Assembly (NCBI GenBank): GCA_950097015.1
Contig: CATNEN010000025.1
Location: forward strand, 6,510,001 to 6,574,000
Direction of reading: 5' to 3'
Source: Macrostomum hystrix
Taxonomy: Eukaryota; Animalia; Platyhelminthes
Length of the DNA stretch: 64,000 nucleotides
This document shows, one piece after another, positions 18,022-61,977 of this stretch. A model generated the notes under the pieces. The model saw nothing but the letters and a program-made list of their open reading frames with translations, had not been told where the DNA came from and ran no database searches. Numbering within the stretch: the stretch's first letter is position 1; the number at the start of each line of letters is the position of its first letter. Made by a program: the position numbers and the translations under genes.

Positions 18022-19040
18022 CCTTTTCAAGCTCGACTTTGGCAAAAGCGACTTCAATTTTGGCAGCCCATAGAAAAGGCGTATGCCTGCCAGCAACATG
18101 TCTATGGTCAACTGTGGTAGAATCGGTTAAGGCGTGCATTCAAAATCCCAACTTGACCCAACAACCCAACTTGACCCAACAACCCAACATTCAATGCACT
18201 AACCTCACTCATGAACTCATGGAACTTGACTTCGGTGAAGCCTCCAGTATGGTGTCGAAGGTGTACCAATCCAAGCTGCGAACTGATAGCCAGGACGACA
18301 GTCAGATTCTGTCCGCGCTGGCTGTCGGGCATCATGACGGCACGTTCACCGGCACCTGCCCATCCCTTTGTCCTTGCCGTCCACAAATTACAGCCAAACT
18401 CGGCCACGTAGATGAGATTGTGTGCGAAGATGCCGGCTTCCATAAACCACTGCATGTGGTCGAAGCGCGCCGCCTTGGTGATATCCGAATTCCAGTGCTC
18501 ATGCACTCGCCGAACGTCCTTCAGCGTGATGTACAGAGTTACAGTCCAGGCGACGGCTGATTGCCTGCACCGACACGCCAGGTGCGCCTGGAAGTTCGGC
18601 TCCATCTTCTCCTTCATCTCCCTCAACGTTATGGTGGGCTTCTCTTCAACAAACCGAGTCACAGCATTTAACATTGGTGGTGTAAATTTTGGCCTCACGG
18701 CTCCCCCTCGTTGCTTCAGCGCAACGCGATCTTCAGTGACAAACCTGTGGATAATTGTGTCGGCAGTGGTTCTCTTTATGTCGAGATCCTTCGCCAGTCG
18801 TCTCCAGTCTCTTCCTTCTTGGTAGCTGCGCACCAGCCGTTCTCGATCCTGCAGCGATATACTCGCGTTCAGCATATTGTTCGGTTGAGTTGCTAAAATT
18901 CGCACATTTTTGCCAAAGTTGAATGCTCGCTTTAACCGATTCTACCACAGTTGACCATAGACATGTTGCTGGCAGGCATATGCCTTTTCTATGGGCTGCC
19001 AAAATTGAAGTCACTTTTGCCAAAGTCGAGCTTGAAAAGG
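18022..19040 (-). mobile_element. Internally deleted Tc1/IS630-type (DDE_3-like) DNA transposon with 122-bp TIRs
   Basis: Inverted repeats 18022-18143 and 18919-19040 have few mismatches and flanking TA dinucleotides (18020-21, 19041-42). The ORF carries an HTH region and a YV(A)EFGCNLWTARTKGW motif (first catalytic Asp changed to Ala) and is truncated before the second and third catalytic residues. Confidence 0.92.
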
Positions 19041-20155
19041 TACGAGTATATTCAACCGATTGCCAAGAAAATCAAGAAAACTGGCACAAACTTCACCGCT
19101 CTCATCGATTAAACAACTTTCATAGTCACAAAATGGTTCACCACCAATGGTTTTCGCTTTTATTTAAGGTCCCGCCAGTCGCTGCCGATGCTCCAGACGG
19201 TGATGAAGGGACCCTGGTGACTGGGAGGCTGAGAAAAAAGGTCCCTACGACAGATGGACTCAGATTATTGAACCAATTCGCAATAGAGGTTCATTAACAG
19301 GAAAAGTTGTGTAGTCTTTCTACTGTAAATAGTGATGATGCCAGAGATAAAAGTGCTTTAATTAAGCTGTCTTTGGCGACAGACTGTTGGTCTGAAGTCT
19401 TCTTCAAAAAAGCAACGCAATGAAGCACACACGCAGTCTCATTAGTCTGTAAGTCTTTCAAACTGCGCCTGAAATTAAGCGGCATTTTGTTAAAGGCCAA
19501 GCAAACTCAACTCGATGGGACAATATATAATGAGCTGAGGCCATTAACCCTTTAGTACTAGAAACATCTCGAGCTGTTTGTTAGTCCCACGACGAAGACC
19601 AAAGCAGCAGCAGCAGCAGCAGTTGTAGCAAAAAACTAGTATAGCTATCCAAATAACTTGTCGCCCTAGCAGTCCTCCCTGTCTATTGTGTGTGTGGGGC
19701 ACTATTTTCTCTAGCCCACAGAGTCGAAATTGAATCGTTTTGCTTCAACCAATCCGCAAGTCTTCTTCTTCGCTCTCCTCTATGTGAGTCGCTCTCTCTC
19801 TCTGTCTTCACAGTTTTACCGTGAAACAAAATGTCCACTCTCTGGATAATTTGCGTAAATATTTCCAGACACACTCAGACTCGCACGCTAGTACTGGTTA
19901 ATAGGCATGCGTTGTTGGGGTGGCCTAGTGACCAAAGCAATTTGAGAGAGAGAGAGAGAGAGAGCTCAATCTTCGCCGCTGCATTAACGGACTACCCGTT
20001 CGTCATCAGTGCTATATCTATCTTAGCAATGCGTCGTTTTTAGTTTTTTTGTTTTAAGTCTTTCGCACTTTAGGCGCAGACTATTCTTCCATTCCTCTGT
20101 TGGGTTTGATGCCCGCCAACAGTTGTCACAACTGGCGCCAGCGGGTACTAATTTC

Positions 20156-26730
<6,575 letters not shown>

Positions 26731-28287: not shown

Positions 28288-30191
28288 ATGCTCAACTTGG
28301 TAGATTTCTTCTGCCTAACTTTGATAGCCATTCTGCTTCCAGCTACAGATGCTACTGATCTAGGTAAGAAAGAGTTACTGGAATCTAGTCTAGATGGTCT
28401 AGACCCGAACTGCAGAAAACATCCGGAGATAAAGAATCGTCCCAAGATCCAAATCCAAAGAATCGTCCCAAGATCCAAATCCAAAGAATCGTCCCAAGAT
28501 CCTTAGCTAAAGAATCGTCCCAAGATCCGTAGCTATAGAATCGTCCCAAGATCCGTAGCTAAAGAATCGTCCCAAGATCAGTAGCTAAAGAATCGTCCCA
28601 AGATCCGTAGCTAAAGAATCGTCCTAAGATCCGTAGCTAAAGAATCGTCCCAAGATCCGTAGCTAAAGAATCGTCCCAAGATCTGTAGCTAAAGAATCGT
28701 CCCAAGATCCGTAGCTAAAGAATCGTCCAAAGATCCGTAGCTATAGAATCGTCCCAAGATCCGTAGCTATAGAATCGTCCTAAGATCCGTAGCTATAAAA
28801 TCGTCCCAAGATCCGTAGCTAAAGAATCGTCCCAAGATCCGTAGCTAAAGAATCGTCCCAAGATCCGTAGCTATAGAATCGTCCCAAGATCCGTAGCTAT
28901 AAAATCGTCCTAAGATCCGTAGCTAAAGAATCGTCCTAAGATCCGTAGCTATAGAATCGTCCCAAGATCCGTAGCAATAGAATCGTCCCAAGATCCGCTG
29001 CAACAGAATCGTCCCAAGATCCGCTGCAACAGAATCATCCCAAGATCCGCTGCAACAGAATCGTCCCAAGATCCGTAGCTATAGAATCGTCCCAAGATCC
29101 GCTGCAACAGAATCGTCCCAAGATCCGCTGCAACAGAATCGTCCCAAGATCCGCTGCAACAGAATCGTCCCAAGATCCGCTGCAACAGAATCGTCCCAAG
29201 ATCCGCTGCAACAGAATCGTCCCAAGATCCGCTGCAACAGAATCGTCCCACAAATAATCGAGTCACAGACTCATAGCCAGATTCCTCAACTATCCCGATC
29301 CGCAGTTCTGGATGGCCCGGTGTCCATCAGCAATTTGTCCTGCTTCGAGTGCTCCGAGACGTTCAACAAAGCAACTCCGTGGATGGCAAATACCACGTGC
29401 CAGTCGTTAATTGGTTTGAATGGCAGGCCTTGCATGGCGGCGCAAACGTTTTGCACTGTGAGTCCGCTTGAGAGAGGAGAGCAGAGCGAGGAGAGGGAAT
29501 GTGGGAGAGAGGATAGAGGAGAGGATAGAGGAGAGGATAGAGGAGAGGATAGAGGAGAGGATAGAGGAGAGGATAGAGGAGAGGATAGAGGAGAGGATTG
29601 AGGAGAGGATTGAGGAGAGGATAGTGGAGAGGATAGAGGAGAGGATAGAGGAGAGGATAGAGGAGAGGATAGAGGAGAGGATAGAGGAGAGGATAGAGGA
29701 GAGGATAGAGGAGAGGATAGAGGAGAGGATAGAGGAGAGGATAGAGGAGAGGATAGAGGAGAGGATAGTGGAGAGGATAGTGGAGAGGATAGAGGAGTGG
29801 ATTGAATAGAGGGGAGAGCAGAGCAGAGAGAGGAGAGAGGAGAGGAGAGAGGAGGTGGAAAGTGGAGAGAGGATAAAGAAGGTAACATGCATCTTAAATC
29901 CCTGTAGGGACACAGATCCCTACAAATTCTTCACGCCACGCCACGCCAACCCCTCAGGTGGCAATCTCTATTCAATACGATGTGCTGATCTCGATCAGTC
30001 GGGGCTGCACGGACACCTGCGTTGAGGGCTGCATCTACGATGGCTACCCGATGACGCAGATCAACTGCGTGAACTGCTGCACAACCAGCTTCTGCAACAC
30101 AATGAGCCACGGAAGCAGAATTAGCCTCAACTGGAGAGGCCTGGTACTGCTACCGTTCGCACTGGTGCTGCTGACCTCTTGGACTGGTTAA
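28288..30191 (+). CDS. Ly6/uPAR (three-finger, quiver/sleepless-like) secreted protein with probable GPI anchor
   Basis: Exons 28288-28363 (signal peptide MLNLVDFFCLTLIAILLPATDA), 29306-29457 (LSCFECS...C...C...FCT) and 29958-30191 (RGCTDTC...NCVNCCTTSFCN, then a hydrophobic tail) join through phase-1 then phase-0 GT-AG introns. The CxxC start and CCxxxxCN end define the LU domain. Confidence 0.88.
28430..29250. repeat. 26-bp minisatellite AGAATCGTCCCAAGATCCG(TAGCTA[A/T]/CTGCAAC) in Ly6 intron 1
   Basis: Period 26, with a block-wise switch of variant near 28990. Confidence 0.95.
29505..29790. repeat. 12-bp GAGGATAGAGGA repeat in Ly6 intron 2
   Basis: Directly visible; the EERI/SSPL/SILS ORFs are artefacts. 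Confidence 0.95.
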
Positions 30192-30631
30192 AATGGAAAC
30201 TGAAATATTCGAATGATAGTAAGCTACTCGGACTGTACATAATTAAGTATTGATTGTCTTTTTGACAGTTTTTTCTTGGAATTTTGTAGCGACGAGTGCT
30301 GCTTTTGTTGTCTTTTTTGCTTTTTAGCTTCGAAAAACATGGCAAACTATTTTCATTACTCGTAAAAGGCCCCACTATCCAGTATCGAATAGCTTTACAA
30401 ATAGCAAAAAAAATTAGTTTAAGCGAGTTTCAAATCTAATAGACGCATTCGTTTTATAAATTGTATCGCCATAATAAGTTTATTTTAGCCACCAGATCCA
30501 GATTTTTTCAGTTTTTTTATTTCTTGGGAAAGCCTAGTTAAACGGCGTGACCGAAAGAATATTTCAGGAGGGCTGCAGGCACATTCTGCCCATTCCGCTG
30601 ACTCCTGAGCACAAACGTACATTTTCAATTA

Positions 30632-32274
30632 TAGCTTTTTGCGTTCAATTTTGGACAGCGGGCTTTCAATTTCGGCAAGGGTCTATGTGTCAGTCTCCCA
30701 TCCCCTCCCATTGGTGTCTATGGCCAGAAAATGCACAGGCGGGCTTTCAAATTCGACAGCGGGCAATCAATTTCGGCATGCAAACGGATTGACTGGAACT
30801 TCTCTCTTACTGGCACTCCTCAGCTCGTGGCAGCTGTCTATGGTAGAAGCAGCTTGACTGCTCGTTAATATGACAGATATCACAGAGGGAGAGAGTTTAG
30901 CAACACTGAGTCTTCTCTGTTAAAATCTAACAGTTTAACATGGAGCATCGGCAGTATGCAACGATATCCAGAGACAAAAGAGATCTTGTCATCCAGGCTT
31001 GGCAGCGCGGAGAGCTCGGGACTGACATATCAAGGATGCTTGGGGTGAAGCGCTCAACCGTGTACAGCATCTGTCACGCTTTTGACACGGAGGGGAGAAG
31101 GTATTCATTGCCTAAGGGTGGTAACAGGCGCCAAAAGCTCACCAACCCCATGAAGAATTTCCTGATGCTACACTGCAGCAGTTGCGTACTCGCTTGCTGG
31201 CCGAGTTTCAGGGTACGCTCGATAGTGTTGAAATCTCGACCATTTCGAGGGCACTGGACGCTCACCTTTACACAATGAAGTACCCCTCGAGGGAAGGTGA
31301 CGTGCTGGCTGCGAGGAACTCCGAGGAAAACAAAGCCAGGAGACATGATTTCGCCAACTGCCGCCTTTTGTTGAGCTGGTGCATCTTGATGAGTCCTGGC
31401 TACGGAGTCTGGACTCGGCGCAGCTTCGGTCGAAGTGTGCGAGGAAAGCCAGTTCTCAGATTTGTGCACACTCAGAAGAGCCCTGGACTCAACCTCATTC
31501 TGGCAACTTCTCCTACTATCGGCTTGGTGGAGTTCAGCCTTGAGATCGGTTCTGTGAACCGTGAGTGCGTGCAGATTTTGGTCCCTCGAATCTGCCAGAG
31601 CGTTGCCGCTCATCTGCCAGAAGGCCATCAGTGTGTGATTCTGCTGGATGGGGCTCGGTTTCACCAGGGGCTTCAAATTCCACTGGAATTTGAAGGTCGC
31701 ATCAGCTTCCGCACCTTGCCGCCATACTCACCATTCCTGAACCCAGTGGAGCTGGCACACAGTGCGTTCAATGCTGCAGTGAAGCGCCAACTGAGTCAGC
31801 CAGCTGTTCAGCAGGAATTTGCCCTTATTCCGGAGGACATGAGCGCTAGGGACTGGAGGATAATGGTGTTGAGGCAATGGATGCCATCACCCAGCAGAAG
31901 TGCAGTGCTTGGTTTCAGCACACACTGCGATTCATCCCTCCGTGCTTGGCTAGAGAAAACATTTTGGTATAAATGTTGACTATCTTTGTCTTTGTGGTCC
32001 GACTTGTTTCACACGTTCGCGACTCTATCGTAGTGTCCCAGTTTGCATTGAATTCATTCAACAAAATTTTCGCGTTTTTCAACTCCGAAATATATATACA
32101 GTTTAAATGTTTGCTTAAGTGGATTAATGCCGAAATTGATTGCCCGCTGTCGAATTTGAAAGCCCGCCTGTGCATTTTCTGGCCATAGACACCAATGGGA
32201 GGGGATGGGAGACTGACACACAGACCCTTGCCGAAATTGAAAGCCCGCTGTCCAAAATTGAACGCAAAAAGCTA
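30632..32274 (+). mobile_element. Frameshifted Tc1/IS630-type DNA transposon with about 148-bp TIRs
   Basis: Inverted repeats 30632-30779 and 32127-32274 are flanked by TA (the exact end is ambiguous by 2 nt). The transposase is split over frames: HTH at 30940, a LDES motif near 31385 in another frame, then LLDGARFH and PYSPFLNPVE. Confidence 0.92.
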
Positions 32275-32590
32275 TAATATGAATTCGCAATACATGCACA
32301 CCAATGTTAGTTGTCGTCAGGGTCTCCGACAAGAATCGTTAGTTTATCGCTAAGGGCGCAAAATTTAAATTCACGCGGGTGGACTTTCACGAAAATCCGT
32401 CATTCGGTTCGGGAGCTATCGTGACGTAGGCAGTGTGGGTATTTAAAATACACAAATTTTTCATTTGCCAAGCGATTTGCCACTGTTGTCTATGGTAAAT
32501 ACTGACAAGTTAGCTAGTTAGCTAGTTGAAAGGAATAATCAGCGCAGCGCGTCAATCTGCTGCTTAGCTACAACAGCGACTGGGATTAGA

Positions 32591-34959
32591 ATGGCATCCG
32601 ACTCATCCGCAACACCACAGCTTATCTTCGGCCAGCCGATCTACGCCACCGTCGAGGAGCGCTATGACAATGAAGGAAGCTCTGGCAGTGGAAATGAAGA
32701 CGAGGAATCAGATATGAAAGAGAGCGACAGTGAAATCTACAGCAACAGCAATTCTTCAGACGGCAGCTCCGATGGCTACGACAGTGTTTGCGACGGTGAC
32801 GGAGACTACAGCCTCCAGTCTTCCAGCCTCACAAACAGATCAGCAGCTGAAGACTTGAGCAGCGAAAGTAGCGAAGATGAAGACCCGACAATCCTGAGTG
32901 CGGACCAAACCGTCGTCGAAGCCGAGAAGAACTCGTCCATGTTCTTGTGGGCTGAGCAGCTCACTAGACTCCTCAATGTTGCGGAATATCAAGCTGAAGT
33001 AAGCACGCAGAAATATGAAGACTGGACCGCTGCCGGCTCTCATAATAAGAACAGTTCTGTTAGGCAACTGAAGCTGCAGAATAATCAAAATCAGGAGCCT
33101 CAAAACATGCATAAGAGCCAAAAGCAGCAGAATGAGGAGGAGGAGCAGCAGGAGCAGCAGGAGCAGCAGCACCAGCAGCAGCAGCATAAGCAGCAGGAGC
33201 AACTGGAGCAGCAAGAGCAGCAGACGCAGCAGGAGCAACTGGAGAAGCATAAGCAGCAGCAGCAGCAGGAGCAGCAGGAGCAGCAGGAGCAGCAGGAGCA
33301 GAAGGAGCAGCATAAGCAGCAAGAGCAGCAGGAGCAGCAGGAGCAACTGGAGCAGCAAGAGCAGCAGACGCAGCAGGAGCAACTGGAGCAGCATAAGCAG
33401 CAGGAGCAGCAGGAGCAGCAGGAGCAGCATAAGCAGGAGCAGCAGGAGCAGCAGGAGCAGCAGGAGCAGCAGGAGCCAAGGCACACGGTAATCGATCCAG
33501 AATATGTGATTTGTCGCACAATAAACGCCTGCTTAAGCCTGCTGCAGGAAGGGTCATACCAGGATTGCGAAGAATGTGTCAAGACACTCTCTGTGAGTCA
33601 AGAAAGCTTTTTTTATTGCATTCCGTTAGTAGACTAAGCATGAAGAATCATGATTGAAGCACTGGGAAACCCAGAAGAATGCAGATAAATAAATAAATAA
33701 TTCTTGAGTAATCTAGGAAAATCATAGAAAAATCGCGGAAAAATCCTATAATAATCCCAGATAGGTCACGTAAAATCCCAAGGCAAAATTTTAGAAAATT
33801 TCATGATAAATCTCAGAAAAATCACTTAAGAATCCAGGAAGTACAATAAAACTATGTAATAACCTCGGATGCATAACCAGGTAAATCTCGGGATGAACCC
33901 CGGAAGAATCCTAGATAAATCCCTGAAGAATCCTGAATGAATCTCTGATAAAATCCCTGAAGAATCCTGAATGAATCTCTGATAAAATCCCTGAAGAATC
34001 CTGAATGAATCACTGATAAAATTCCTGAAGAATCCTGAATGAATCACTGATAAAATCCCTGAAGAATCCTGAATGAATCTCTGATAAAATTCCTGAAGAA
34101 TCCTGAATGAATCTCTGATGAAATTCCTGAAGAATCCTGAATGAATCACTGATAAAATCCCTGAAGAATCCTGAATGAATCTCTGATAAAATCCCTGAAG
34201 AATCCTGAATGAATCACTGATAAAATCCCTGAAGAATCCTGAATGAATCTCTGATAAAATCCCTGAAGAATCCTGAATGAATCACTGATAAAATCCCTGA
34301 AGAATCCTGAATGAATCTCTGATAAAATCCCTGAAGAATCCTGAATGAATCACTGATAAAATCCCTGAAGAATCCTGAATGAATCTCTGCATCCCCAACA
34401 GACAGGCGATAATTCTCCTTTGGGCTGCCGGAATCTTCTTGACCGACTGTGCAACCTGGAGACTCTGCTGCTCTACCTGCAGCTCACTTACCGATCGAAG
34501 CTGTCAGACGCCAGGCTGAAGGAGCTCTGCCTGCTGAAGCGAAGCATAAGCGCCCTTGAAAGCTGCCTCCTACGCCAGGAGGCTGACAATGCTCTGGCCT
34601 CGGCTACTTTATCGCACCAACGGCTGGAGCGCCACGGTTGGGCCAACTTGCGCCGCGGCTGGAGCAAGTTGCCTCTGCAGGACTTCAAGCGTTTTAACCC
34701 GCAAGTGGCTGATGCGAATCTACGCCCGGTCAGCGTCAAACCCGAGGACAAGTGGCTCCGGGCGTACATGCCGGCATCGGATCAGGCGAACCTGGCCGTC
34801 ATCCTAGCCGAACCCGAGTCTCTGGGTAGTCAGCGACTCGGCCGCATGTTGGCCATGCCTAAACGACGCGGCCGGTTCACCCGACTAAAAAGCAGATTCC
34901 AACGAGACGTCTACGAAGACATGATTAGCAGGTTCCGCTTTGCTGGCTTGGACCGTTGA
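32591..34959 (+). CDS. Unrecognised protein: acidic Ser-rich N-terminus, Gln/Glu repeat tract, basic helical C-terminus
   Basis: Exons 32591-33592 and 34402-34959 join through a phase-0 intron (TCT|GTGAGT...CAACAG|ACA) with a GC-rich, open second exon. No family motif was recognised. Confidence 0.7.
33900..34390. repeat. 34-bp minisatellite AAATCCCTGAAGAATCCTGAATGAATC(T/A)CTGATA in an intron
   Basis: Period 34; it ends about 10 nt before the acceptor at 34400-01. Confidence 0.95.
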
Positions 34960-34964
34960 TTAGC

Positions 34965-35570
34965 TTCGGAACGCTCATAAAATGGTCGCTCATGGTTCAT
35001 GACGCTCATAAAATGGTCGCTCATAGTTCGTGACACGCATAATATAGCCGCTTAAATTATATGAAGCTCATAATATGCTCGCTTATAGTTCCTGACGCCA
35101 ATCATAATATGACCGCTCATGGTTTGTGACGCCACTCATAATGCGACGCTCATAATTCTTGACTCTCAAAAAATCGTCGCTCATAGTTCATGACACTTAT
35201 AAATGGTGTCATGAACTATGAAGCTCATAATATGCTCCCTCACGCTTCATGACGCCACTCATAATATGACCACTCATGGTTTATGACGTTCATAATATGA
35301 CTGCTCATAAAATTTTTGCTCGTAGTTCATGAGGCTCATAAAATAGTCGCTCATGGTTCATGACGCTCATAATATGACCTCTCATGGTTCGTGACGCTCA
35401 CAAAATGGTCGCTCATGGTTTATGACGTTAATAATATGACCGCTCATAAAATTTTCGCTCGTAGTTCATGACGCTCATAAAATTGTCGCTCATGGTTCAT
35501 GACGCTCATAAAATAGTCGCTCATAGTTTATGACGCTCATAATATGGCCGCTCTTTGTTCGTTACGATCA
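34965..35570. repeat. Degenerate about 32-bp GACGCTCATAAAATGGTCGCTCATGGTTCAT repeat directly after the stop codon
   Basis: Recurrent CGCTCAT/CATGAC cores. Confidence 0.85.
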
Positions 35571-36205
35571 TAAAGAAATAAGGGTCGCTAAAACAGATAA
35601 TGCTAACAAGGTGGAAAGCATAGATATGAAGTTCATTTTGTGAGTTTATTTTTGCATGAAACTTTTACTGACTAAAATAAAAAGAAACAACAAAACAGCT
35701 GACGGGTTCTACTGTAAAATTACTGTAATATTTCTCTTTGGTAATGGCTGTATTTAAACTTTAATCGCGTTGCATACGGTTCGATTGAGTTTAGCAAATA
35801 TTGGATTTGAATTTAGCTTAGCAAATCAGGTTACTATAAACAGAACTATAATTTTGAGGAAGTTAATTAGTGATTGATGAAGCAATTTTATGCACTGCTA
35901 AGTTTTCCATTGCTATTCCATTGCGTGAAGCTGTGAACACTTTCTCTGCTCAATCAATTAAGCAGGCCGGTGATTTTTTGTGATTAATTTTAGAGCACAC
36001 AATTCTTTTTTGGGGAGATATTTAAGTGCTTTTTTCTTCTTTGAGAGAGAGGAGGGATAAGACCAGCCAAAATTTCATTGGCTAAGCACAAGATTGCGCC
36101 CATTGGTTCACAGATAAGCTAATAAAAACCATCAGAAATCATCTTGCCTGACAGCTTGTTCTAGAAGTTGATCTTGTTTTATATTGCGACAATTTCATTT
36201 GCACG

Positions 36206-39044
36206 ATGAGAATTTCCAGCAACTTTTCTGTAACTTTTCTGCTGACTCTGTGTGCCATTGCGCACGACATTATGATAACTGATGCAACCGCAGAACTGCT
36301 GGCTGCTGACAAAGGTGAGGCAACTGCTGTGGGTGGCTTGTGCAATTTACACCCATGAGAGTGTTAGTGTACACTGACTGACGATGACAATTTTCACACA
36401 AGCTTATTGTTATTTTTAGGCATTTTTGGCAATGAAATCTCCATTGTGATTAAGTTTGAGTTTGACTCGACATTCAGCGCACCGAGGCTACTGAAGTCAA
36501 TTGAAGTTAGAATTTAATTAAGACGTCTCAGGTTGTGATCAGGAACATCGACTATTGATAGTTTTTTATCTAATAAAATTGCTTTCTGAAACTCAACCTA
36601 ATTCTGTCAACCGGGAAGACGAAAATATATCAGGAGAGGGTAGAAAAACATGACACTCCTTGCCTTGACCAATCAGATCATCATATCGGAGGGGGGGTAG
36701 AAAAATTAGATGCTCGTTGGCTTGACCAATCAGACCGAAAGGATAGAAAAACGTGACCTTCGTTGCCTTGACCAATCCGATCGGAGGGGTAGAAAAAAGC
36801 GATTTCAGGGCATAAATTTCTCAATTGCACAAATTTCAAATTAATCAGGGATCTTGCGTTGGACGCACTTTTATGTGGAAACAGGAAACAGTCTAATCCA
36901 ACATGAAGACTCTGAACTTACACGCAGCTTATTCAAGTACAAAATAAAATTGCTATGCCGGGAATCCGGAATCTCATATTATTTTTTTACAGAAAGTCAG
37001 CCTCTAAAGCTGCCTTGCACATCCTCTCCTTCGGGTGGTAAAAAATTGAGTCTTGTATCTAGACATCCTGTCAGTTCATTTTCTTCTTACTCTCATTTCT
37101 GAAGCAAAATTTTGCTACTTCGTTTGGTTTCTGCTGATAAAGAATAATTTTAGAATCGATAAAAGGGCCAAAGTTCTTGCTTGTTCAATTTCAATAAAAG
37201 CCCTCGTGGTCGCAAGAACTTTTAGGAATTACACAGGAAATTCTCTGAATAAAAAAATGCTGCAATTATTTCTATCCATCGATCTTTATTTGGTTTTAGA
37301 TTTTCTCTCAAATCAAAGCGGCTACAAGACAGGCAAACCAGCAGCATTTTTAAAGTAATAAAGGAAATTAAACATTTTTCTATTCAATACAACAATTTTG
37401 TTTGATAACAACGGTAAGATGATCAGTGATGCTTTGAAAAAAACATTACGAGCCTAAAAATGGAACTAAAACATGGGTTTAAATGTATAGGGTATTAAGG
37501 TATCGAATTAATCAGAAATACCACTGATTGGGAATCCTACTGATTGGGAATCCCACTGATTAGGAATCCCACTGATTGGGAATCCCCCTGATTGGGAATC
37601 CTACTGATTGGGAATCCTACTGATTGGGAATCCTACTGATTGGGAATCCTACTGATTGGGAATCCTACTGATTGGAAATCCCACTGATTAGGAATCCCAC
37701 TGATTGGGAATCCCTCTGATTGGGAATCCTACTGATTAGGAATTCCACTGATTGGGAATCCTACTGATTGGGAATCCTACTGATTGGGAATCCTACTGAT
37801 TGGGAATCCTACTGATTGGGAATCCTACTGATTGGGAATCCTACTGATTGGGAATCCTACTGATTGGGAATCCTACTGATTGGGAATCCTACTGATTGGA
37901 AATCCCACTGATTAGGAATCCCACTGATTGGGAATCCCTCTGATTGGGAATCCTACTGATTAGGAATTCCACTGATTGGGAATCCTACTGATTGGGAATC
38001 CTACTGATTGGGAATCCTACTGATTGGGAATCCTACTGATTGGGAATCCTACTGATTGGGAATCCTACTGATTGGGAATCCTACTGATTGGGAATCCTAC
38101 TGATTGGGAATCCTACTGATTGGGAATCCTACTGATTGGGAATCCTACTGATTGGGAATTCCACTGATTGGGAATCCCACTGATTCGGAATCCTACTGAT
38201 TGAGAATCCTGCTTATTGGGAATCCTACTGGTTGGGAATCCTACTGAATGGAAATCCTTCTGATTGGGAACCCTGTTGATTGGGAATCCTACTGATTGGG
38301 AATCCTACTGATTTTTATTCCTACAAATACAAAAGTTTCTACAGTACAGAACAATATCGCTAGTCAAACCTGAATTATATTTGGAATTGCGAAATATATT
38401 CTCTCGTCTAGAAAAGTTCTTTCCTTCGATCAAAAAATGTACCACTGTTTGATTTCAGATCATCAAGATTTCCCTCGCGACGGCAAAGTATTATCTTACA
38501 AACGCTACAATGCGATGAGTAAGCTATGAGTAACCTATTGTATCAAATGTTTGGTCAAGTTGCAAGCAAGATTAAGGAATAATTGATTCATTCGCTGTTC
38601 TAATGCTTTTACCCAACTAAGATTCTTGGTCAATGCTAATTAGATTAGTTGTCACGACCAAATCTATGGGTCAATTTGTTTTTCGCATTTCTTGCAAAAA
38701 TGTATTACAACTGCAATAAGTACACACTAGTTTATAGCGTCATCTCTAGTAGATACAATTATGCTTACTGAATACTAATAAATCACCCCAATAAAGGTCG
38801 GGGGTTCGATTCCCGACTACACTGAAAAAATTTGTGTCCTTTAGCATGACACTTCAAATAAGCAACCACAATAGTACTACTCAATACCACTTCAGACATT
38901 CAGTTCGGCAGTCAGATCCCATGGGAGAGCGACGACATCGTCTACGCCAACGGCTTCAAGCCGCTCCGCGGCAAGCGAGCAGAGCAGGCGGACGAGTCCA
39001 AGAGCAGGCCGCAGCGGCCCCGTCACCACCTGAACGGAGTCTAA
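36206..39044 (+). CDS. Amidated neuropeptide precursor (tachykinin-related/natalisin-like), 105 aa; absent from the ORF track
   Basis: Exons 36206-36314, 38459-38518 and 38896-39044 join through two phase-1 introns (G|GTGAGG...TTTCAG and A|GTAAGC...CTTCAG). Translation: MRISSNFSVTFLLTLCAIAHDIMITDATAELLAADKDHQDFPRDGKVLSY-KR-YNAMNIQFGSQIPWESDDIVYANGFKPLR-G-KR-AEQADESKSRPQRPRHHLNGV*. Confidence 0.78.
37520..38315. repeat. 16-bp minisatellite CTGATTGGGAATCCTA in neuropeptide intron 1
   Basis: About 50 tandem units; the minus strand reads CCCAATCAG. Confidence 0.95.
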
Positions 39045-40249
39045 AAAAATGGTTTTGCACATCAAATTTGGCAATGCCGCCGACAGACTAATAATAAGAG
39101 CTAGGCTCTATGCGCAAGTGCAATCACTGTTTCTATGGGCATATATTTACAATATCTTCAAATACTCAGCATCATGTAAAAAAAATGTTTGTATTTGAAA
39201 TTCGCCCCGTGTTCCTTCTACTGTTAAAAAATAAATATCTACTTGAGTTAGCTACTAAACTAAGTAGTGAGCTGCGCAAATGGATTTGGGAATAGATTTC
39301 GATTGCACTTTACAGCTAATCACGAGCGAGTTACCGAATACCCTAATGCCCAATGCGTGTTTTTTCCTAGATGGGATTTCTTCCCAGAAACTTTTTCGCA
39401 TGGCAAGGTCTGGCATTTGCATTATTGGTCGCAACTAGGATAAAAGACTGCCTGGACTGCTGATGGGATGGCGAAGTTTTTTGGGGCAATGGGAATGGGA
39501 AAAGACAGGTGCAAGCAGAAGCGTGTGAATCTTCTAGTTAATTAATTTAATTAATAGGTTAGGATTTTTTAAATACTTTAATGAAAAACTATTTAGTAAC
39601 ACGTTCATATTCCAGAACAACACAAAATTCAGCAGTTCGCTCGAGTTATTTTCTGCCCCTATATACGTACCTTCAATATCATATTTGCCCGTGTAATAGG
39701 CCGCGACCACTGCCGCAGATGATGAAGAGGCTGGGAGGCTGGGGGAAACTGGCTATCCCCATTGAAGACCAATTATCAGTAGCGGCTATCTGCACATCTG
39801 CAGGTGCACTAGATAGACCCAGCCTCTGGGCAGTTGGAATTTTCTTGTTAAAGCTCCAAATAGAGAGATCTGACATGCCATCTAGATAGATCGTAACATT
39901 GCATCTAGGCACTGTCTGACCTTAGGAATTCTGGGATTCTGAATTTGGGATTGTGGCGTGTCGGATAGATTTCTATAGTGCACTTCATTCTTAATCCAAC
40001 CGTCCAAATGGGATTTGTTTCCCGTTTCCTGATTTCTCCCGATCTGATAAGAGACCAAGTCAAAGGCGGGGCAGAAGGCTAGAAGGCTTTCCGCTTGTCG
40101 AAGATAATTAGGCTACTAATTTAACAAAGATTCATTCGACCTTTACAATAACCATGGAATACAAATGCAAACCAGCCGATTCACCGAAATCGGACCAAAG
40201 TACTGGCCAAATTTTATCGAATATAATATTAACCCTGCTAGTAGACCTG

Positions 40250-41135: not shown

Positions 41136-41750
41136 ATCTCACTAGCAGGTATATACGGAATCGTTGTACTGATGTATATGTGCTGTTGCACCAGAAATCT
41201 AAGTTGGAATTGCACTACTATTCAGGTAAAGTCGTCACATTAATCATACGCTGGTGCGAGGTTATATGCTTATTGGTTTATATAGATATTCCATTGCTTT
41301 GTGTTACACTCAGACAGCCCAGTTCAGCATCTGTTTCAGAAATAATATTTTACTGTCAAACCTGTTTATCAACAGTCGATACGAAGCAGCATCCTGCAAT
41401 GTTTCCAGCATCCCCTCTCTATCAGTTTTTCTTACCAAGAAACATAATCATTCTCTTCGGGGTGAACAAACAATGTTTGAAACGATTTTACATAGAAAAA
41501 CATGGGTGGGTAACCGCTGTGTTTTTGGAAACGCATACTTTAGTGCACTTTTGCCAGTGCAGCCTATCAGATTACACTGGATGGAGTGCGACTTGAGGCA
41601 CCCAGAGCCAACCAGAGTGCTTGCAGTCGCTGGCTAATATTATTAATAATTTTCTCGTTTTCTATCCTTTTATTTTTAGATTTTTTCTGGCCAAAAAAAT
41701 TCAGATAGATTTCAACATTGCTTTTGAATATTCAGAGTTCATTTATTTGT

Positions 41751-41764
41751 GTTGCTATGGTAAC
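41751..41764. promoter_or_regulatory. RFX X-box consensus GTTGCTATGGTAAC overlapping the predicted NTPDase ATG
   Basis: A 14-nt match to GTTGC(C/T)ATGG(C/T)AAC; motif evidence only. Confidence 0.5.
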
Positions 41765-44700
41765 TAGTCGTCTCGGACTCACGCTGCTCTGCTACTGTCT
41801 TCTTTTAGAGGCCGTTAGAGCAAAGCTGAACTCTCTGCAAGGTGACGCTTTGTCAAAGGATGCAAGCCGCAGATTTAACAGCTTGCCCACTGATCAACGG
41901 CATCAACCAAACTCGGGCTGGAAGACATCGCGACCCACCCAGCAACCGATTGTAGCCACCCAGCAACCAATTCCATCCACCCAGCAACCGATTGTAGCCA
42001 CCCAGCAACCAATTCCATCCACCCAGCAACATATTGTAGCCACCCAGCAACCAATTCCATCCACCCAGCAACCGATTGTAGCCACCCAGCAACCAATTCC
42101 ATCCACCCAGCAACATATTGTAGCCACCCAGCAACCAATTCCATCCACCCAGCAACCGATTGTAGCCACCCAGCAACCAATTTTAGCCGCCCAGCGACCA
42201 ATTCCATCCACCCAGCAACCGATTCCATCAACCCAGCAACCGATTGTAGCCACCCAGCAACCGATTTTAGCCACCCAGCGACTGATTCAACCAGCCCAGC
42301 AACCGATTTTAGCCACCCAGCGACTGATTCAACCAGCCCAGCAACCGACACAAACAGCCCAGCAACCGACTCAAACAGCCCAGCAATCGACTCAAACAGC
42401 CCAGCAATCGACTCAACCAGCCCAGCAACCGACTCAAACAGCCCTGCAATCGACTCAAACAGCCCAGCAACCGACACAAACAGCCCAGCAACCGACTCAA
42501 ACAGCCCAGCAATCGACTCAACCAGCCCAGCAACCGACTCAACCAGCCCAGCAACCGACTCAAACAGCCCAGCAACCGACTCAAACAGCCCAGCAATCGA
42601 CTCAACCAGCCCAGCAACCGACTCAAACAGCCCAGCAATCGACTCAACCAGCCCAGCAACCGACTCAACCAGCCCAGCAACCGACTCAAACAGCCCAGCA
42701 ACCGACTCAAACAGCCCAGCAATCGACTCAACCAGCCCAGCAACCGACTCAAACAGCCCAGCAACCGACTCAAACAGCCCAGCAACCGACTCAAACAGCC
42801 CAGCAATCGACTCAACCAGCCCAGCAACCGACTCAACCAGCCCAGCAACCGACTCAAACAGCCCAGCAACCGACTCAACCAGCCCAGCAACCGATGCCAG
42901 ACAAGTACCTGCTCGTGCTAGACGCAGGCAGCACAGGCACCAGAATCAACGTCATGCACTTCCAGCCAGACGCGGGCCATTCAGCTGGTCTGCGTCTCGT
43001 CCGCTTGGATTACGAGAGCGTCCGGCCCGGGCTCTCGGCCTATCGGCACTTCCCCAACCGGGTGGCGGCGAACCTGGCCCCGCTGTTGGCCTTCGCGGCG
43101 CAGCGCGTGCCAGCGGAGGCGCCGCCGACGGCAGCGGTGCTGGCCGCCACGGCCGGACTGCGGAGCCTCCAGCGATCCGACCAGCAGCGACTGCTGATGT
43201 CGGTCAGGCGGGCTTTGAAGACTGGCGCAGCCAGAGGGTCGAGAATCGGGCCGACCTCGGCTCGAGTGCTCAGCGGCACCGAGGAGGCGCTGTTCGGCTG
43301 GCTGGCCGTGAACTTCCTCATGAACTCGCTGGGCCGTGGCGCGAACTCTGCGGCCAGCACCTACGGCATGCTGGACATGGGCGGCGGCTCCACCCAGATT
43401 GTCTTCCAGCCGGAGCAGCCAGACCCGGCAGATCAGTACTCGGTGCCGTTCCGCACCCTCGGCGGCCGGGTGTTTGTGCTGCATCAGCACAGCTACCAGA
43501 CGCTTGGAATGTCGCAGGTGAGATGACTTTCAATTTTTGGAAAGTCCGGCTTTTGAGCTACTATAAGTAGACAAAAAGCACACTGATGCTTTTTTTATAA
43601 AAACAAACAAAAATGAGCGCAAAAGTTCGTTGTGCACTTTTAAATTGTATCACGCAAAGGGAAGTTGTAGGCCAGTGCGTTTGGCTGCTGAATGTGTGGT
43701 CTGGAGTTCGAATTTCAGGACAGGGGAAAAATAGTTATGATTGCTGGAGGGCGACTGAGGACAACGTTTAGTGGCACTAGACCCGCAGCCAGCGAGGAGG
43801 CAATTCTGCCTATTCCGCTGACTCCTGAGCACACACGCACACAGATACTGTACGCAGGCATTCACTCACACAGGTGTGTACATCTGCCCTGACTTTCTCA
43901 TCGTCAGAAAGTTTACACTTTCACTGTGCCTCGGAGGTTGGCCCTTAAGGGCGTAAAATTGCACGACAAGCCCTCAAGCCTTCTCTCTAAATAAATGTGG
44001 CCTCGCTGCGGAATCGAGCTCAGGGACGTTGGTGCAAGAGGCAAACTCTTTATAACCGCTCAGCCACTCACCTCCAAGCACAGGGAAAACAGTAGGCGTC
44101 CTTGATTGATAGATTGAAATAACAGCCAATGATACAGCCGCAGCTTTTAAATTTCTGCGTACAGCGTATTGCGGTAGGGCCCAGTCCACGGACTGAACAG
44201 TTGCAGAAGTGGACTAAACCTAATAGGGTTGTTTCTAAGTGATTTCAATCTCATTTCGTCATTTGCCAGGTGACCCTCGACCTTCTCGGCCACAGCGAGG
44301 ACAGCGGCGACGGACACTTTGTGACCCCCTGCCTGGCGGCCAACTTTTCCGCCAATTTCAGCTTCGGCGCCATCACTGTTGTAGTTCAGGGCGACAATCA
44401 GGTTAGCGATGCCGAACGGTTCGATCTGTGCGCTCAGCAACACGAGCATCGACTCAATGCGGCCAATGTGCACAGGTAGGCGGCGGCTTCTGGAGGAGTT
44501 TAACAGGGGTGACTGAAGTTTAAAAAGGGAGACTGTAGTTTAACAGGGGAGATGTAGTTTAACAAGGGAGATGTAGTTTAACAGGGGTGACTGAAGTTTA
44601 AAAGGGGAGACTGTGGTTTAACAGTGGAGATGTAGTTTAACAGGGGAGACTGTAGTTTAACAGGGGAGACTGTAGTTTAACAGGGGATACTGTAGTTTAA

Positions 44701-53521: not shown

Positions 53522-56500
53522 TTAGCTGAAGCGTAGCCTTCCAGCTGATGCGGATGTTGAAGCGGCCACCTGCGCCGCCGCCGCCGACGCCACCCGGTTC
53601 CCGGTGCTGCTCGTTGACACCAGTAGAACGTGATGCCCGCCAGCGCTACCGCCGCCGCTGGCTAATCGCTTTGGAACTGCGCGATCTTGATCCTGGCATA
53701 GCAACAAGCGAAAGCGGGATCTTGTTCGATTTACATAGAAGGTTGAGATTCACTGTTGAAACCATCGCGTCAGTAAAGTGAAATTCAGATTTCCCATATT
53801 TTGCATCCACAATATTTACTCACCGGGAGAGGCTCCGGTCTGCCTCCGCCGCCGCCGCTGCCGCTTATAAGCCCTGCAGATGACGTCCGCGGCGATGCAA
53901 CAGGAGGTGGCTGCTGACGAAGTCTGTATCATTGTAGTGAGAATTGATGTTTGTGAGAATAACGGATTAGAATTGAAAATATTTTTTTCTAGAAACTGAT
54001 TAGAATCCATCCATTAAAATCGAAAACGCTCAGTAGTTATCTACCTCACTCCGCTATCGATCGTAGGTAGACACACCCACCCCACTTTGCCATCAATCGT
54101 GGGCACCCAACTCACTCCGCTATCGATCGCTGACACCCACCTCATTCCGTCAAATACATCGCCTATATACCGACAGCTGGAGGAAACAAAAATAAATTTA
54201 AATACTCGTACAAGTACAAGGGCAGAAAACTGCTTATTTACAAGGTTACTAGAGGCGTGAAAAAATATTACAAAAAATTATCCTGCCTACAATTAAGAGA
54301 GTAGTTCTAGATGGGAGAATTTTCAGGTGAGAGTTAAAAATGCACATGGATTCAGCCAGCAGTTTTCACACTCGATAAGCAGCTCGCTGTGGCAGGCCTT
54401 AATGGAAGTCGAAATTTACAATTTTCGCCCGCTCAACAAAAATTATTTTAGCATGCGAAAAAAAACTGATGGAAATGAAAAATTCCAGCTCTCTGGAACT
54501 AACCAGCACAGAACAGACCAAAGTGAAACACCAAATTTCGCTGCCTACCTGTACCCACCTTGGATAATAACTTAGATTCTCAGACAAAAAATGTAATTTA
54601 TTCTCTCGACCGACTATTTAAAATGTGTGAATAAAATAGCAACTACAGGCTTGGGAGTCTCAGCGGTTAACGCGTTTGCCTCTATCACCAAGGTCCCTGC
54701 AGAGCTCGATTCCGCGGCGAGGCCACATTCATTTGTGGCGCAGCCGCGGAGAGAAGGCTTAGGGGCTTGTCGTGCAATTTACGCCCTTGATGGCCAACCT
54801 CCGAGGCACAGTGGAAGTGCACACTGCCTGACGATGAGAAAGTCAGGGCAGATGTACACACCTGTGTGAGCGCGTGCCTGCGTACGGTATCTGTGTGCTC
54901 AGGAGTCAGCGAAATGGGCAGAATTGCCTCCTCGCTGGCTGCAGTTCTAGTGTCATCAAATGATGCGCCATTGCACGCAGCCCTCCGGCAATTATTTTTT
55001 TTATTAACTAACGCTTTGCTTCGTTTCAAATTCAGAAGAAAACGAATTTTTTTCAGGAAATTCGATAAAACTTTTAGCGTTAATGCTCACGATATACTAC
55101 TGCTCATAGCGTTCTCAACCAGCGGCTGCACAAACCCTGCCGCCGCACCGCGAAGGTTGTAGTCGCTGGCGCTGAACACGCCGACGCTACCGCCGCCTCC
55201 GACAACAGCAGCCGCAGATTCTGCAGGGCGTCGCCTCTTTTTCTTGCCGGTGCGTCGACGATAAGCCGAAATTGACTCCGCCGGTGTATCAGCCGAAGCA
55301 GACCCCGCCGCGGAATTGGCTTCAGTGTAGGCAGCCGGGAGCGGCATAAGCTGGGCGGGCAGCAGAGGGCTCGATGCCGGATGTTGACGCTCCTGATGCT
55401 TTGGCTTGATTACAGCTGAGGGTGCGAAGAAAAAAAGAATAGAAAAGAGTAACTAGAATTCATTACAGACGCCCCATTGACTCTGTTATAGAAAACTGTC
55501 TGATACGCACACGGCAGTCCAAATCAACCACACCCACCTCACTCCGCTATAGATCGATAACATGCCCATATAGAGGATGAGTTGCGGAGCGGTAAGGCGT
55601 CCACTCCAGCCCATGGGCCTATGAGCTGGATGCCGCGGCGAGGCCACATTCATTTTGGACGCAGCCACGGAGAGAAGGCTTCGGGGCTTGTCGTGCAATT
55701 TACGCTCATCAGGCCTAAGCCCCAGGCACAGTCATAGTGTACTCTACTTGACGATGTGAAAGCCAGTGTAGATGTACACCTGTGAGTATGTGCTTGTGTA
55801 CGTATCCGTGTGCGTGCGTGTGCTCTATGGCTTGCGGAATGGTCAGAATTGCCTCTTCCCTGGACGCGTTTCAACTGTTACCAGATACTGCAGGCCCTGC
55901 GTTTATGAGTTCTATTTAATGTAGCTAAATATTGTTTCCCACCAAAATGCCGTTTTGCTCTAGCTAAACGGCATGCCGACCCACTCCGGTATCAATTGGT
56001 GACAATACCCACCCCACTCCGTAATCGATTGGTGACACACCCACCCCACTCCGTAATCGATTGGTGACATACCCACCCCACTCCGTTATCGATTGGTGAC
56101 ATACCCACCCCACTCCGTTATCGATTGGTGACACCCATCCCACTCCGTTATCGATTGGCTACTTACACTTTACACTGCGCCATGAACATTAAAAGAAGAC
56201 TTTGCGAACTATAAGCATCAAAACTTGTCAATAATAATATTAGGTATGCTGAAAATATTTTTCCCCACGATTGAGCGAATTTAAGCGGAGAGACAGAGTG
56301 TGACCTCTCTTTGCTCGCCAAGGATGTCTTAACAGAAAGAAAAGCTTAAGCATGATTAAACACCGCTTTTCTGCCGGACCATGATCCCGCTGAATTTCCC
56401 AATTTCCTCTTCCTTCTCGTTAATATCTTCCAACAGTCAACAGGGCCAGAAAACAAAGGAGGAGGTTCAAAGTCGAAATGAAAGAACACGCAGTGGCAGA

Positions 56501-59500: not shown

Positions 59501-61977
59501 GCACATATTTCATAAGAATAGCATTTAGTCATATCGAGAACAATAAATTACGAGGGTTCGTAAACTGTTCTATTCAACGATAGATGGTCATTTTACTGAC
59601 CGCGCAAGACCCATGAGCTGATGAAAGTTGCCCATGAATCTCGGCTGCACTGTGCCCCGTCTTCCAAAGGGTGTAAATCACACTCCTCTGGGCAAAACTT
59701 GAATGCACATCCATTATCTTTAGCACAGCAAGAAATGAAAACAAAAATGCTCGTACTGAAGCCAAGTCCCAGTGAGAGATATGAAGATTTCATTCCATCT
59801 TTTCCAGAGACAACTTTCAAATTATAACTTCATTATGATTTTTCCAGAGACATATCTATCTTTGTCGCGGATTGAGAAATTGAGAAATTTTGGTTGAAAG
59901 AGTGACCTCAGTCGAAAGCACTTTCGTAGCATTCCGATAGCTTGTTGATTTACTGTAAGTCTATGTTTGAGGTCCTGTTAGTTTTTCGTTGATGACTTCT
60001 ATTTCCCTAGTCTGTTAGAAAAAAGATTTGAATTAATATAAAGAAGAGACTTGCCGCTATAAGACTGTGTCAAATCACGTTATTTGAACCATCAGAACAA
60101 AAGATATAATCAAAAGTAACACTACTTTTGGGACAGCCCTCGTATTTATCCAACTTATCCAACCAAATAAGTTGGATTTATCCGAAAAAATTTCAGACAT
60201 ACTCAAAGTACGAGTACAACCCACACTGACGCCTCCACTCTAATCTAGCGCGAAAAAACCCCAGCATCACACCTCCACCCTTATCTGGTGCGCATATAAC
60301 CCTAGATAACACATTCGCCCCTGATCTGGTGCGCGAAAAAAACCCAACATCACACCTCCACCCTTATCTGGCGCGCATATAACCCTAGATAACACATTGG
60401 CCCCTGATCTGGTGCGCGAAAAAAACCCAACATCACACCTCCACCCTTATTTGGCGCGCATAAAAAACCCTGCATCACACCCACCCCTAATCTGGCACGC
60501 TGAAAAAACACATGATCACACCACACAATGGTGTGATCATGTGTATTGCGGCCACACAATACGCGACGGGCCAGCGCTAGTGCAGCTGCACTCCAAACCC
60601 CTTAATCTCAGATTAGTTGAGGTGGGCTTTTGTGCCCAGCCAGCCGACTCGCTAAGTCGGGGAGGGCGTTGTGCGAAGTCACGCCACTTTTTCGCACCTC
60701 TCTAGGCCCCTCTATCACCCTCTACGAGTATGTTCAAATATAAATATACTCGCCATGCAGCCCACGATCTTCGCTGCCATCTCTTAAGCAAATAGGCCTT
60801 CCGCCTTAACTGTTTATATTGTACTCACAGCTGGCTGTTTGTTACTGGCAGGCCCAGCCGTCTCGTCTTCATTGGGTGCCACCAACTTCTGCCTGTAGTG
60901 GCTGGCCAGAATCAGCTTGCAGTAGTGCAGCCGGCGCTGCTTGGCGCAGTCCCAGGCTGTGGCACCTTCGCTGTCGCGCGAATCAATTTCAGCTGGCAGA
61001 GAAAAACAATTTCAGTTGAGCTACTGACGATTAGCGTTAAATGAGCCATGCAAAATGTGAGCAGTCATTTGATTGGGGTAAAAGTGCATCACTTTCAAAT
61101 CTGCCTCTACTCCAGGTTGCTGCTGGTAAACCAATGAAAGCGTGAATTGGAACGGGCAATTAGGGACAAAAACTGCGACAAACCAAAATGTCTTCTTTAA
61201 AGACTCGTTCTTTAATCGTGCTTCGAGTTCTAATTCAGGCTAAAACTGGCTCAGACCGGACGTATGAAGTCTGGCGCTCATTCTAAGGTAGTAAACTACT
61301 GGCAGGACTTGGCCAATCGTTTAAGATAAAGCCAGCCAAATGCTTTGAGTTCAAAACAGAATTTTGACCTGCCCTGTGGGGCTAAAGGGATTAACACCCT
61401 GAGCTTGGACAGGAAAAAAGGAAGTCGAAATTCTCGACGTGGTAAAAAGGGGAATTGGAAGCATTTGGGTTTTAGATTTTGGGCTAAGAGAGTTTACTTC
61501 AAAAGTTTTCCAATCGATAAAAAGCAGTCTTCAAAGCCAAAAATAGCTGATAACATTTTTTATTACACCTGCCTCCATTGGGCCAGATGTGCAGCCGATA
61601 GCACAGCCGCAGATATTGCGCGGCGCATCTGAAGACTGCGTACGACTGTCCAGTCCATGGACTGGGGAGACGCCACACGCATAGGGTGTCTTTGTCCTCT
61701 GTCTTGCGAAAGGACACAAACTGTTTCAGTGGAAATGGGAATCGAACCCCTGACCTTTAAGTCGAGAGTCACTCTAACCACTAGGCTACAACCCCCTGGT
61801 TGATAAGGCTAGCCAGACAGACGGCATCCTCACCTCCTTGATCAAGCAGGAAGTTCAGCAATTCTCCGTGTCCGCCTATGGTGGCGAGGTGAATAGCTGA
61901 CCGGCCATCGTTGTCAATAGCTTCCAGTGCTGACTTGCCGCCGGCATCCAGGATTAGCTGGCAGGCTGACATTGCGC
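53522..61977 (-). CDS. Ankyrin-repeat protein with long disordered Pro/Ser/Gln/Gly-rich C-terminus (5' part beyond the window)
   Basis: Exons are 61977-61834 and 60992-60829 (ANK repeats DNDGRSAIHLATIGGHGELLNFLLDQG|AEIDSRDSEGATAWDCA), then about 59288 (or about 59382/59392)-59112, 58892-58538, 58211-57933, 55415-55091, 53923-53824 and 53692-53522 (stop). All junctions are GT-AG and phase-consistent except the one between 60829 and the 59.1-59.4 kb exon. Confidence 0.72.
54648..55000 (+). mobile_element. SINE family 1, near full-length copy
   Basis: tRNA-like head GTCTCAGCGGTTAACGCG...GAGCTCGATTCCGCGGCGAGGCCA, conserved body and T-rich tail. Confidence 0.87.
55628..55862 (+). mobile_element. 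SINE family 1, older diverged copy
   Basis: GCCGCGGCGAGGCCACATTCATTT...GAGAGAAGGCTTCGGGGCTTGTCGTGCAATTTACG...CAGAATTGCCTC matches the family body. Confidence 0.75.
55985..56160. repeat. 32-bp CCCACCCCACTCCGT(A/T)ATCGATTGGTGACA(C/T)A repeat
   Basis: About 5 tandem units; related dispersed units occur at about 54040-54150 and about 55530. Confidence 0.85.
56725..57925. repeat. 23-bp minisatellite AACTGACACAA(C/T)CTTCTCCCAAG in an ANK-gene intron
   Basis: Period 23; it begins about 7 nt after the minus-strand donor at 57932. The LCQFLGE ORFs are artefacts. Confidence 0.96.
58240..58410. repeat. About 32-33 bp CTCCTGACACCCACCTCACTCTC repeat in an ANK-gene intron
   Basis: About 5 degenerate units adjacent to the acceptor at 58212-13. 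Confidence 0.8.
59551..60142 (-). mobile_element. Mariner-family remnant (592 bp, internally deleted)
   Basis: The ends are TA|CGAGGG (59549-56) and CCCTCG|TA (60137-44). ORF 59574-59765 has QRSVIYTLWKTGHSAAEIHGQLSSAHGSCAVSKMTIYR, resembling the first mariner HTH. The terminal match extends only about 6 bp. Confidence 0.75.
60235..60520. repeat. About 83-bp tandem repeat (about 3 copies)
   Basis: GCGCGAAAAAA.CCC..CATCACACCTCCACCCTTAT recurs at 60248, 60331 and 60414. Confidence 0.85.
61560..61790 (-). mobile_element. tRNA-derived SINE, family 2 (variant b)
   Basis: The minus-strand head TGTAGCCTAGTGGTTAGAGTG...GGGGTTCGATTCCC carries A and B boxes. The 3' part is shared with 23925-24020. Confidence 0.8.

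Follow-up and report, generated by a model that had tools for sequence, protein, structure and literature searches.

The tachykinin-related peptides of protostomes canonically end in FxGxRamide, and they are usually 9–11 residues long and follow a KR site (PMC6880623). The oyster tachykinin FGFAPMRamide deviates from this motif (PMC4200219); at the receptor of the oyster, no residues other than the first Phe and the last Arg are critical (PMC9521575). Nemertean tachykinins, of the form GFYAVRamide, are encoded in precursors that are mostly single-copy and have a short tail (PMC8557429 supplement). As of 2019 no tachykinin was known from flatworms, and the natalisin family, together with its receptor, is regarded as a duplication in the arthropod lineage (PMC6880623).

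The NKY peptides are defined by an N-terminal Lys accompanied by FW[RQ]P[LM]G and by a C-terminal Tyr (PMC6425005), and they occur as long single copies of 38 to 43 residues. Nemertean NKY precursors have a conserved FGSQI core and end in KPFRY-G (PMC8557429 supplement). Platynereis NKY-1 has FGSRI and ends in NGIKAMRY-G, while Capitella NKY-1 has FGSRL, a 10-residue spacer and the end AGIKAMRY-G. The FW motif is absent or eroded in one Lottia member and in Dinophilus, whose NKY-like peptide lacks it and ends in FKGMRF-G. NKY1 has already been reported from a polyclad flatworm. NKY peptides activate sNPF-type receptors weakly, apparently via their RY-amide tip (bioRxiv 712687).

Here we describe a locus of the flatworm Macrostomum hystrix that is a real, probably unannotated small neuropeptide gene. 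The core of its peptide resembles that of NKY-1, and the tip resembles that of spiralian tachykinins.

Results

The analysed DNA (the window) is a stretch of 64,000 nucleotides in which an initial annotation had proposed a hidden neuropeptide precursor made of three short exons. We could reproduce the proposed reading in silico: 36206-36314, 38459-38518 and 38896-39044 (109, 60 and 149 nt) have GT-AG ends and matching phase (1/1), and they join into an ORF of 105 aa that contains both the hydrophobic N-terminus and the GFKPLR-G-KR sequence described. Across all six frames, the window contains the pattern GFxxxRGKR once, where Markov shuffles predict 0.02 occurrences. GC3 of exon 3 is 0.84, compared with 0.63-0.84 in the other coding exons of the window and a GC content of 0.35 in the surrounding intron. 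The features of the locus are listed below.

36075..36127, + strand: putative promoter, with two reverse CCAAT boxes (36075 and 36100) and a TATA-like TAATAAAA (36120, + strand), pattern matches alone
36206..36314, + strand: coding part of exon 1, with ATG, putative signal peptide, short acidic stretch and phase-1 donor AAG/GTGAGG
37523..38313, no strand: tandem array of a 16-mer in the intron, 49 copies, about 790 nt
38459..38518, + strand: claimed exon 2, 60 nt, phase 1-1, which would add a KR site; unsupported
38792..38854, + strand: intronic SINE-like fragment derived from a tRNA and present in high copy, T-arm GGGTTCGATTCCC, unrelated to the peptide
38896..39044, + strand: last coding exon, which encodes the body of the peptide, the signal for amidation and cleavage, and a 21-aa tail before the stop
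38904..38918, + strand: FGSQI, the NKY-1-type core, the same five residues as in nemertean NKY precursors
38949..38978, + strand: NGFKPLR-G-KR, comprising the C-terminus, the Gly amide donor and the dibasic site; Tyr is absent between R and G
39045..39235, + strand: 3' UTR, with AATAAA at 39230 and contig ends at 39140 and 39166

The region 36075..36127 is the probable promoter of the neuropeptide gene. The window holds 14 CCAAT-type boxes, two of which lie upstream of exon 1 with a spacing of 25 nt. Several CCAAT boxes also occur in a short direct repeat in intron 1 (36634-36782); ORF text near 54327-54575 looks similar to this repeat, which is possibly a dispersed element. The SINE-like fragment reached a summed depth of 1000-2300 inside many different contigs and has copies near 24084-24107 and 61700-61759. 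It was considered as a tRNA gene and is not one.

Elsewhere in the window, we recognized by eye broken Tc1/mariner (IS630-like) transposase ORFs (18108-18905 and 30940-31979), exons of an Armadillo-repeat protein and a HUNK/SNF1-like kinase with a long low-complexity tail (1681-2993 and 20123-26730). An NTPDase-like ORF at 41718-43526 has a long Gln/Pro/Thr repeat between its signal and its catalytic part. The minus strand carries exons of a two-pore potassium channel at 10366-14057, whose nearest database proteins are 30-41% identical; the only named match of one of these exons is to a protein of the flatworm Clonorchis, at 30%.

In order to examine transcription, contigs from three public runs of one study were aligned to 38320-39850, downstream of exon 1 and of the tandem array, and contig orientation was checked by reference to how long the loose ends were in further records of this alignment. 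In this stretch the contigs of the three runs covered 38894-39166 and the high-copy repeat, and the adjoining unique intron was uncovered. From this confinement of coverage to exon 3, the UTR and the repeat, the three runs are probably RNA. Two coding positions differed between the runs and the assembly, 38963 and 39032, and both differences are synonymous in the proposed frame of exon 3, whereas at least one of them is non-synonymous in each other plus-strand frame. One run had an 8-nt deletion at 39111, which falls in the UTR, outside the ORF. Exon 3 (38896-39044) is coding and transcribed, and the frame assigned to it initially was correct. GFKPLR-G-KR was intact in all three runs, with no indel; thus, the missing Tyr before the Gly is not an assembly error.

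The claimed exon 2 fared differently: its depth was 0 in each of the three runs, and no joint was called. At the exon 3 acceptor, two contigs depart from the genome sequence, as expected of a spliced transcript; their further 47 and 24 letters, upstream of exon 3, occur nowhere on 38320-39850. Both match exactly 2 nt (AG, 38894-38895) into the intron, mismatch-free. Exon 1, which ends in AAAG, shares exactly 2 nt with the intron end, while exon 2, which ends in ATGA, shares 0, so these joint letters fit exon 1, and not exon 2, as the partner of exon 3. Eight donors within 30000-38860 fit the joint; exon 1 scores best by far and is the sole one of the eight with a signal-like start. We infer that the transcribed gene likely consists of two exons, exon 1 and 38896-39044, and encodes a precursor of 85 aa. 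The three-exon model thus probably does not hold for the observed transcripts, and because exon 2 is unsupported, the KR site and the 29-residue peptide that had been predicted from it are unsupported as well.

At most, the claimed exon 2 is a rare cassette exon. It is unlikely, but compatible with any of the readings considered below, that the three-exon form is a regulated cassette isoform in which inclusion adds the KR site and gives the 29-residue peptide, whose start, KR-Y-N-A-M, would then echo the NKY start K-x-F-W-x-P-M. The exon has a length of 60 nt, phase 1-1, a CAG acceptor and a GTAAG donor, and only two low-depth contigs inform the joint. However, the joint letters of both contigs exclude it, it is uncovered in three runs, and candidates of this kind arise by chance: there are 59 phase-compatible open candidate exons, among which it ranks third.

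Peptide precursors of this type typically follow the prohormone route, in which a convertase cuts at a dibasic site, a carboxypeptidase trims the product, and PHM/PAL turns the exposed Gly into an amide. The N-terminus of the 85-aa precursor is predicted to be a signal peptide, with a hydropathy peak of 2.5 over residues 9-19, a basic residue at position 2 and A-x-A sites; these sequence features would place the cut after residue 19, 27 or 29. The putative signal peptide would take the precursor into the secretory pathway. The required Gly plus dibasic site is present after the peptide (R-G-K-R, 38967-38978): a prohormone convertase would cut at Lys63-Arg64, carboxypeptidase would trim the end, and PHM/PAL would convert Gly62 to an amide on Arg61, releasing a single long peptide ending in NGFKPLR-amide. 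Such a peptide would comprise 32-42 residues when counted from the signal cut, or about 25 when cleaved at the single Lys36. The precursor contains one copy of the peptide, with a length of 25-42 residues depending on the choice of N-terminal cut. The product is thus likely, as judged from the sequence, an 85-aa preproneuropeptide that releases one amidated peptide of 25-42 residues. The original proposal of a hidden precursor whose one long Arg-amide peptide is interrupted by an intron is upheld.

We compared the peptide with published NKY and tachykinin sequences by eye and with short motif tests. The initial annotation had called it tachykinin/natalisin-like, and its tip fits relaxed tachykinin motifs. 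As in the oyster and nemertean tachykinins, the C-terminus reads G-F-x-small/Pro-hydrophobic-R-amide followed by KR, and the residues critical for the tachykinin receptor, an aromatic at -5 and a terminal Arg-amide, are both present. The statement in the annotation that some molluscan tachykinin-like peptides have FxPxRamide was borne out by the oyster FGFAPMRamide (PMC4200219). As in the nemertean tachykinins, the peptide occurs once, close to the C-terminus of a precursor that has a short tail; single copies had been described as unusual, a view that does not hold for spiralians, as most nemertean tachykinin precursors are single-copy (PMC8557429). In contrast to spiralian tachykinins, which have 7-11 residues, the peptide here has 25-42, with Pro rather than Gly at position 3 and no upstream KR. 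The strict FxGxR-amide is absent, the tip being F-K-P-L-R, and the peptide does not lie as a short segment between basic sites, since the supported isoform has no KR upstream and the nearest Lys is 25 residues off.

These likenesses might be explained by another gene of the tachykinin type, a paralogue with a single copy and an N-terminal extension that acts on a tachykinin receptor and has its FGSQI by chance. The G-F-x-P-x-R-amide tip matches oyster FGFAPMRamide as well as the nemertean pattern, in which GFYAVR-G-KR occurs once close to the C-terminus and a short tail follows; Lottia, Platynereis and abalone have two tachykinin genes each, and chelicerates are predicted to have extended tachykinins as long as 37 residues. 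Against this, the tip departs from strict FxGxRamide, there is no dibasic site within 25 residues upstream whereas usual tachykinins are 9-11 residues long after KR, and an FGSQI at NKY spacing stays unexplained. We consider such a paralogue possible but doubtful.

The natalisin half of the proposal is poorly supported. The peptide shares the loose FxxxR-amide consensus, but this is a weak motif, with a chance of about 0.005 of occurring before any amide site, and the natalisin precursors of arthropods and tardigrades are multi-copy while the one here has a single copy. Moreover, the family is known from arthropods and tardigrades only (PMC6880623).

The body of the peptide matches NKY-1, which had been overlooked, and this likeness accounts for more of the peptide than the tachykinin one does. 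The peptide contains FGSQI, then ten residues, then NGFKPLR-G. The motif pair FGS[QRK][IL] and K-[PAG]-[FLM]-R with a spacing of 8-14 residues, taken from the published sequences of annelid, nemertean and phoronid members after the match had been noticed, is present. When the 18 upstream residues were shuffled, 263 of 2,000,000 shuffles gave the core with an allowed spacing (p 1.3e-4, uncorrected and for a motif chosen post hoc); roughly corrected for about 70 families, p becomes ~0.001-0.01. With the NKY-1 peptides of annelids, nemerteans, phoronids and some molluscs, the gene shares a small precursor with one long amidated peptide, the FGS[QR][IL] core, a spacer of about 10 residues, and a tail of the form G-[IF]-K-x-hydrophobic-R or K-P-F-R. 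The 32-42 residues counted from the signal cut would be in keeping with the roughly 35-43 of the single long NKY-1 peptides.

Several NKY-1 features are lacking. The peptide has neither the terminal Tyr/Phe nor the GPLP(V/I)ET stretch nor the K-x-F-W-x-P-M-G start; it ends in R-amide, with no C-terminal RY- or RF-amide. The N-terminal Lys with FW[RQ]P[LM]G is absent from the exons and from all three plus-strand frames upstream, where no hidden exon was found. In the supported isoform no dibasic site precedes the peptide, and while the compared NKY precursors end 0-6 residues after the amide Gly, the precursor here has a 21-aa tail after the cleavage site. Because the terminal Tyr and the FW motif are absent and the tip departs from FxGxRamide, we place the gene in neither the NKY nor the tachykinin family.

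Homologue searches were run exon by exon, with queries of 36-60 aa, lengths at which sensitivity is low. Protein searches with the short exon 1 and exon 3 queries returned no homologue, a result of little weight for queries this short; the sole database match of exon 3, to an 83-aa tandem repeat, was rejected as weak matches summing up. With the same short exon queries there was no match in Pfam, nothing beyond unnamed low matches in the ESM Atlas, and no homologue among metagenome contigs, and an FKPLR peptide was not found in a literature search. That no homologue appeared in any database searched, together with the lack of the diagnostic features of both NKY and tachykinin, would suit a lineage-specific orphan neuropeptide with its own receptor, whose likeness to the two families is coincidental or too remote. 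The insensitivity of the searches weakens that argument, and two separate NKY-1 motif matches in the right order and spacing speak against an orphan, which we think quite improbable.

The corazonin/GnRH pattern is F-S-N-G-W-H-P, with the motif of a pyroGlu start and F/Y-S/T-x-G/D/S-W. Y-A-N-G-F-K-P in the peptide has a superficial likeness to F-S-N-G-W-H-P, but it lacks the Trp at its invariant position, and the signal peptide is not followed directly by a pyroGlu start. Likewise, a pyrokinin whose residues were swapped would have to do without PRx-amide, and F-x-P-R-L/M/V-amide does not occur. Both identifications are very hard to sustain. Planarian eye53, leucokinin (GFKPWG) and allatotropin were also considered and rejected, their motifs not being found.

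Discussion

Our preferred reading, which we rank above tachykinin paralogy and hold with a confidence slightly better than even, is that the peptide derives from NKY-1, no longer has its Tyr, and today possibly works through tachykinin-type receptors. We prefer NKY-1 descent because it explains the core, the spacing, the tail and the length, at the price of two losses. By such descent, the peptide would be a divergent NKY-1 type in which the FGS-Q-I core and the G-F/I-K-x-hydrophobic-R tail persist and the ancestral FW..G motif at the N-terminus and Tyr at the C-terminus have disappeared. It counts against this reading that both name-giving residues, the N-terminal Lys and the C-terminal Tyr, are absent along with the FW motif, that the precursor has the 21-aa tail, and that our exon-wise searches found no bridging homologue in another flatworm.

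Without its Tyr, the peptide would no longer be an RYamide, and its binding to sNPF/NKY-type receptors is expected to be poor, while an aromatic at -5 together with a terminal Arg-amide could confer tachykinin-like action on a rhodopsin-type GPCR. From these residues we put the chances of action on a tachykinin-type receptor at about even. The full sequence of events, in which an NKY-1 gene lost its Tyr codon, the RY-amide became an FxPLR-amide and the peptide switched to a tachykinin-type receptor, seems rather unlikely as a whole.

An NKY body with a tachykinin tip in a tractable flatworm would allow a direct test of which part of an NKY peptide decides receptor choice, and of whether the loss of one residue can shift a ligand to another receptor family. 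Should the gene prove to be just a further tachykinin, or an NKY paralogue that has eroded, it would add modestly to the flatworm neuropeptide catalogue. If the switch is true, a ligand would have changed naturally from one family to another within the RFamide/RYamide/tachykinin receptor group while retaining a recognizable NKY body, and this would also bear on the question of the true NKY receptor. The peptide may therefore show how a member of one hormone family drifts towards a receptor that belongs to a different one.
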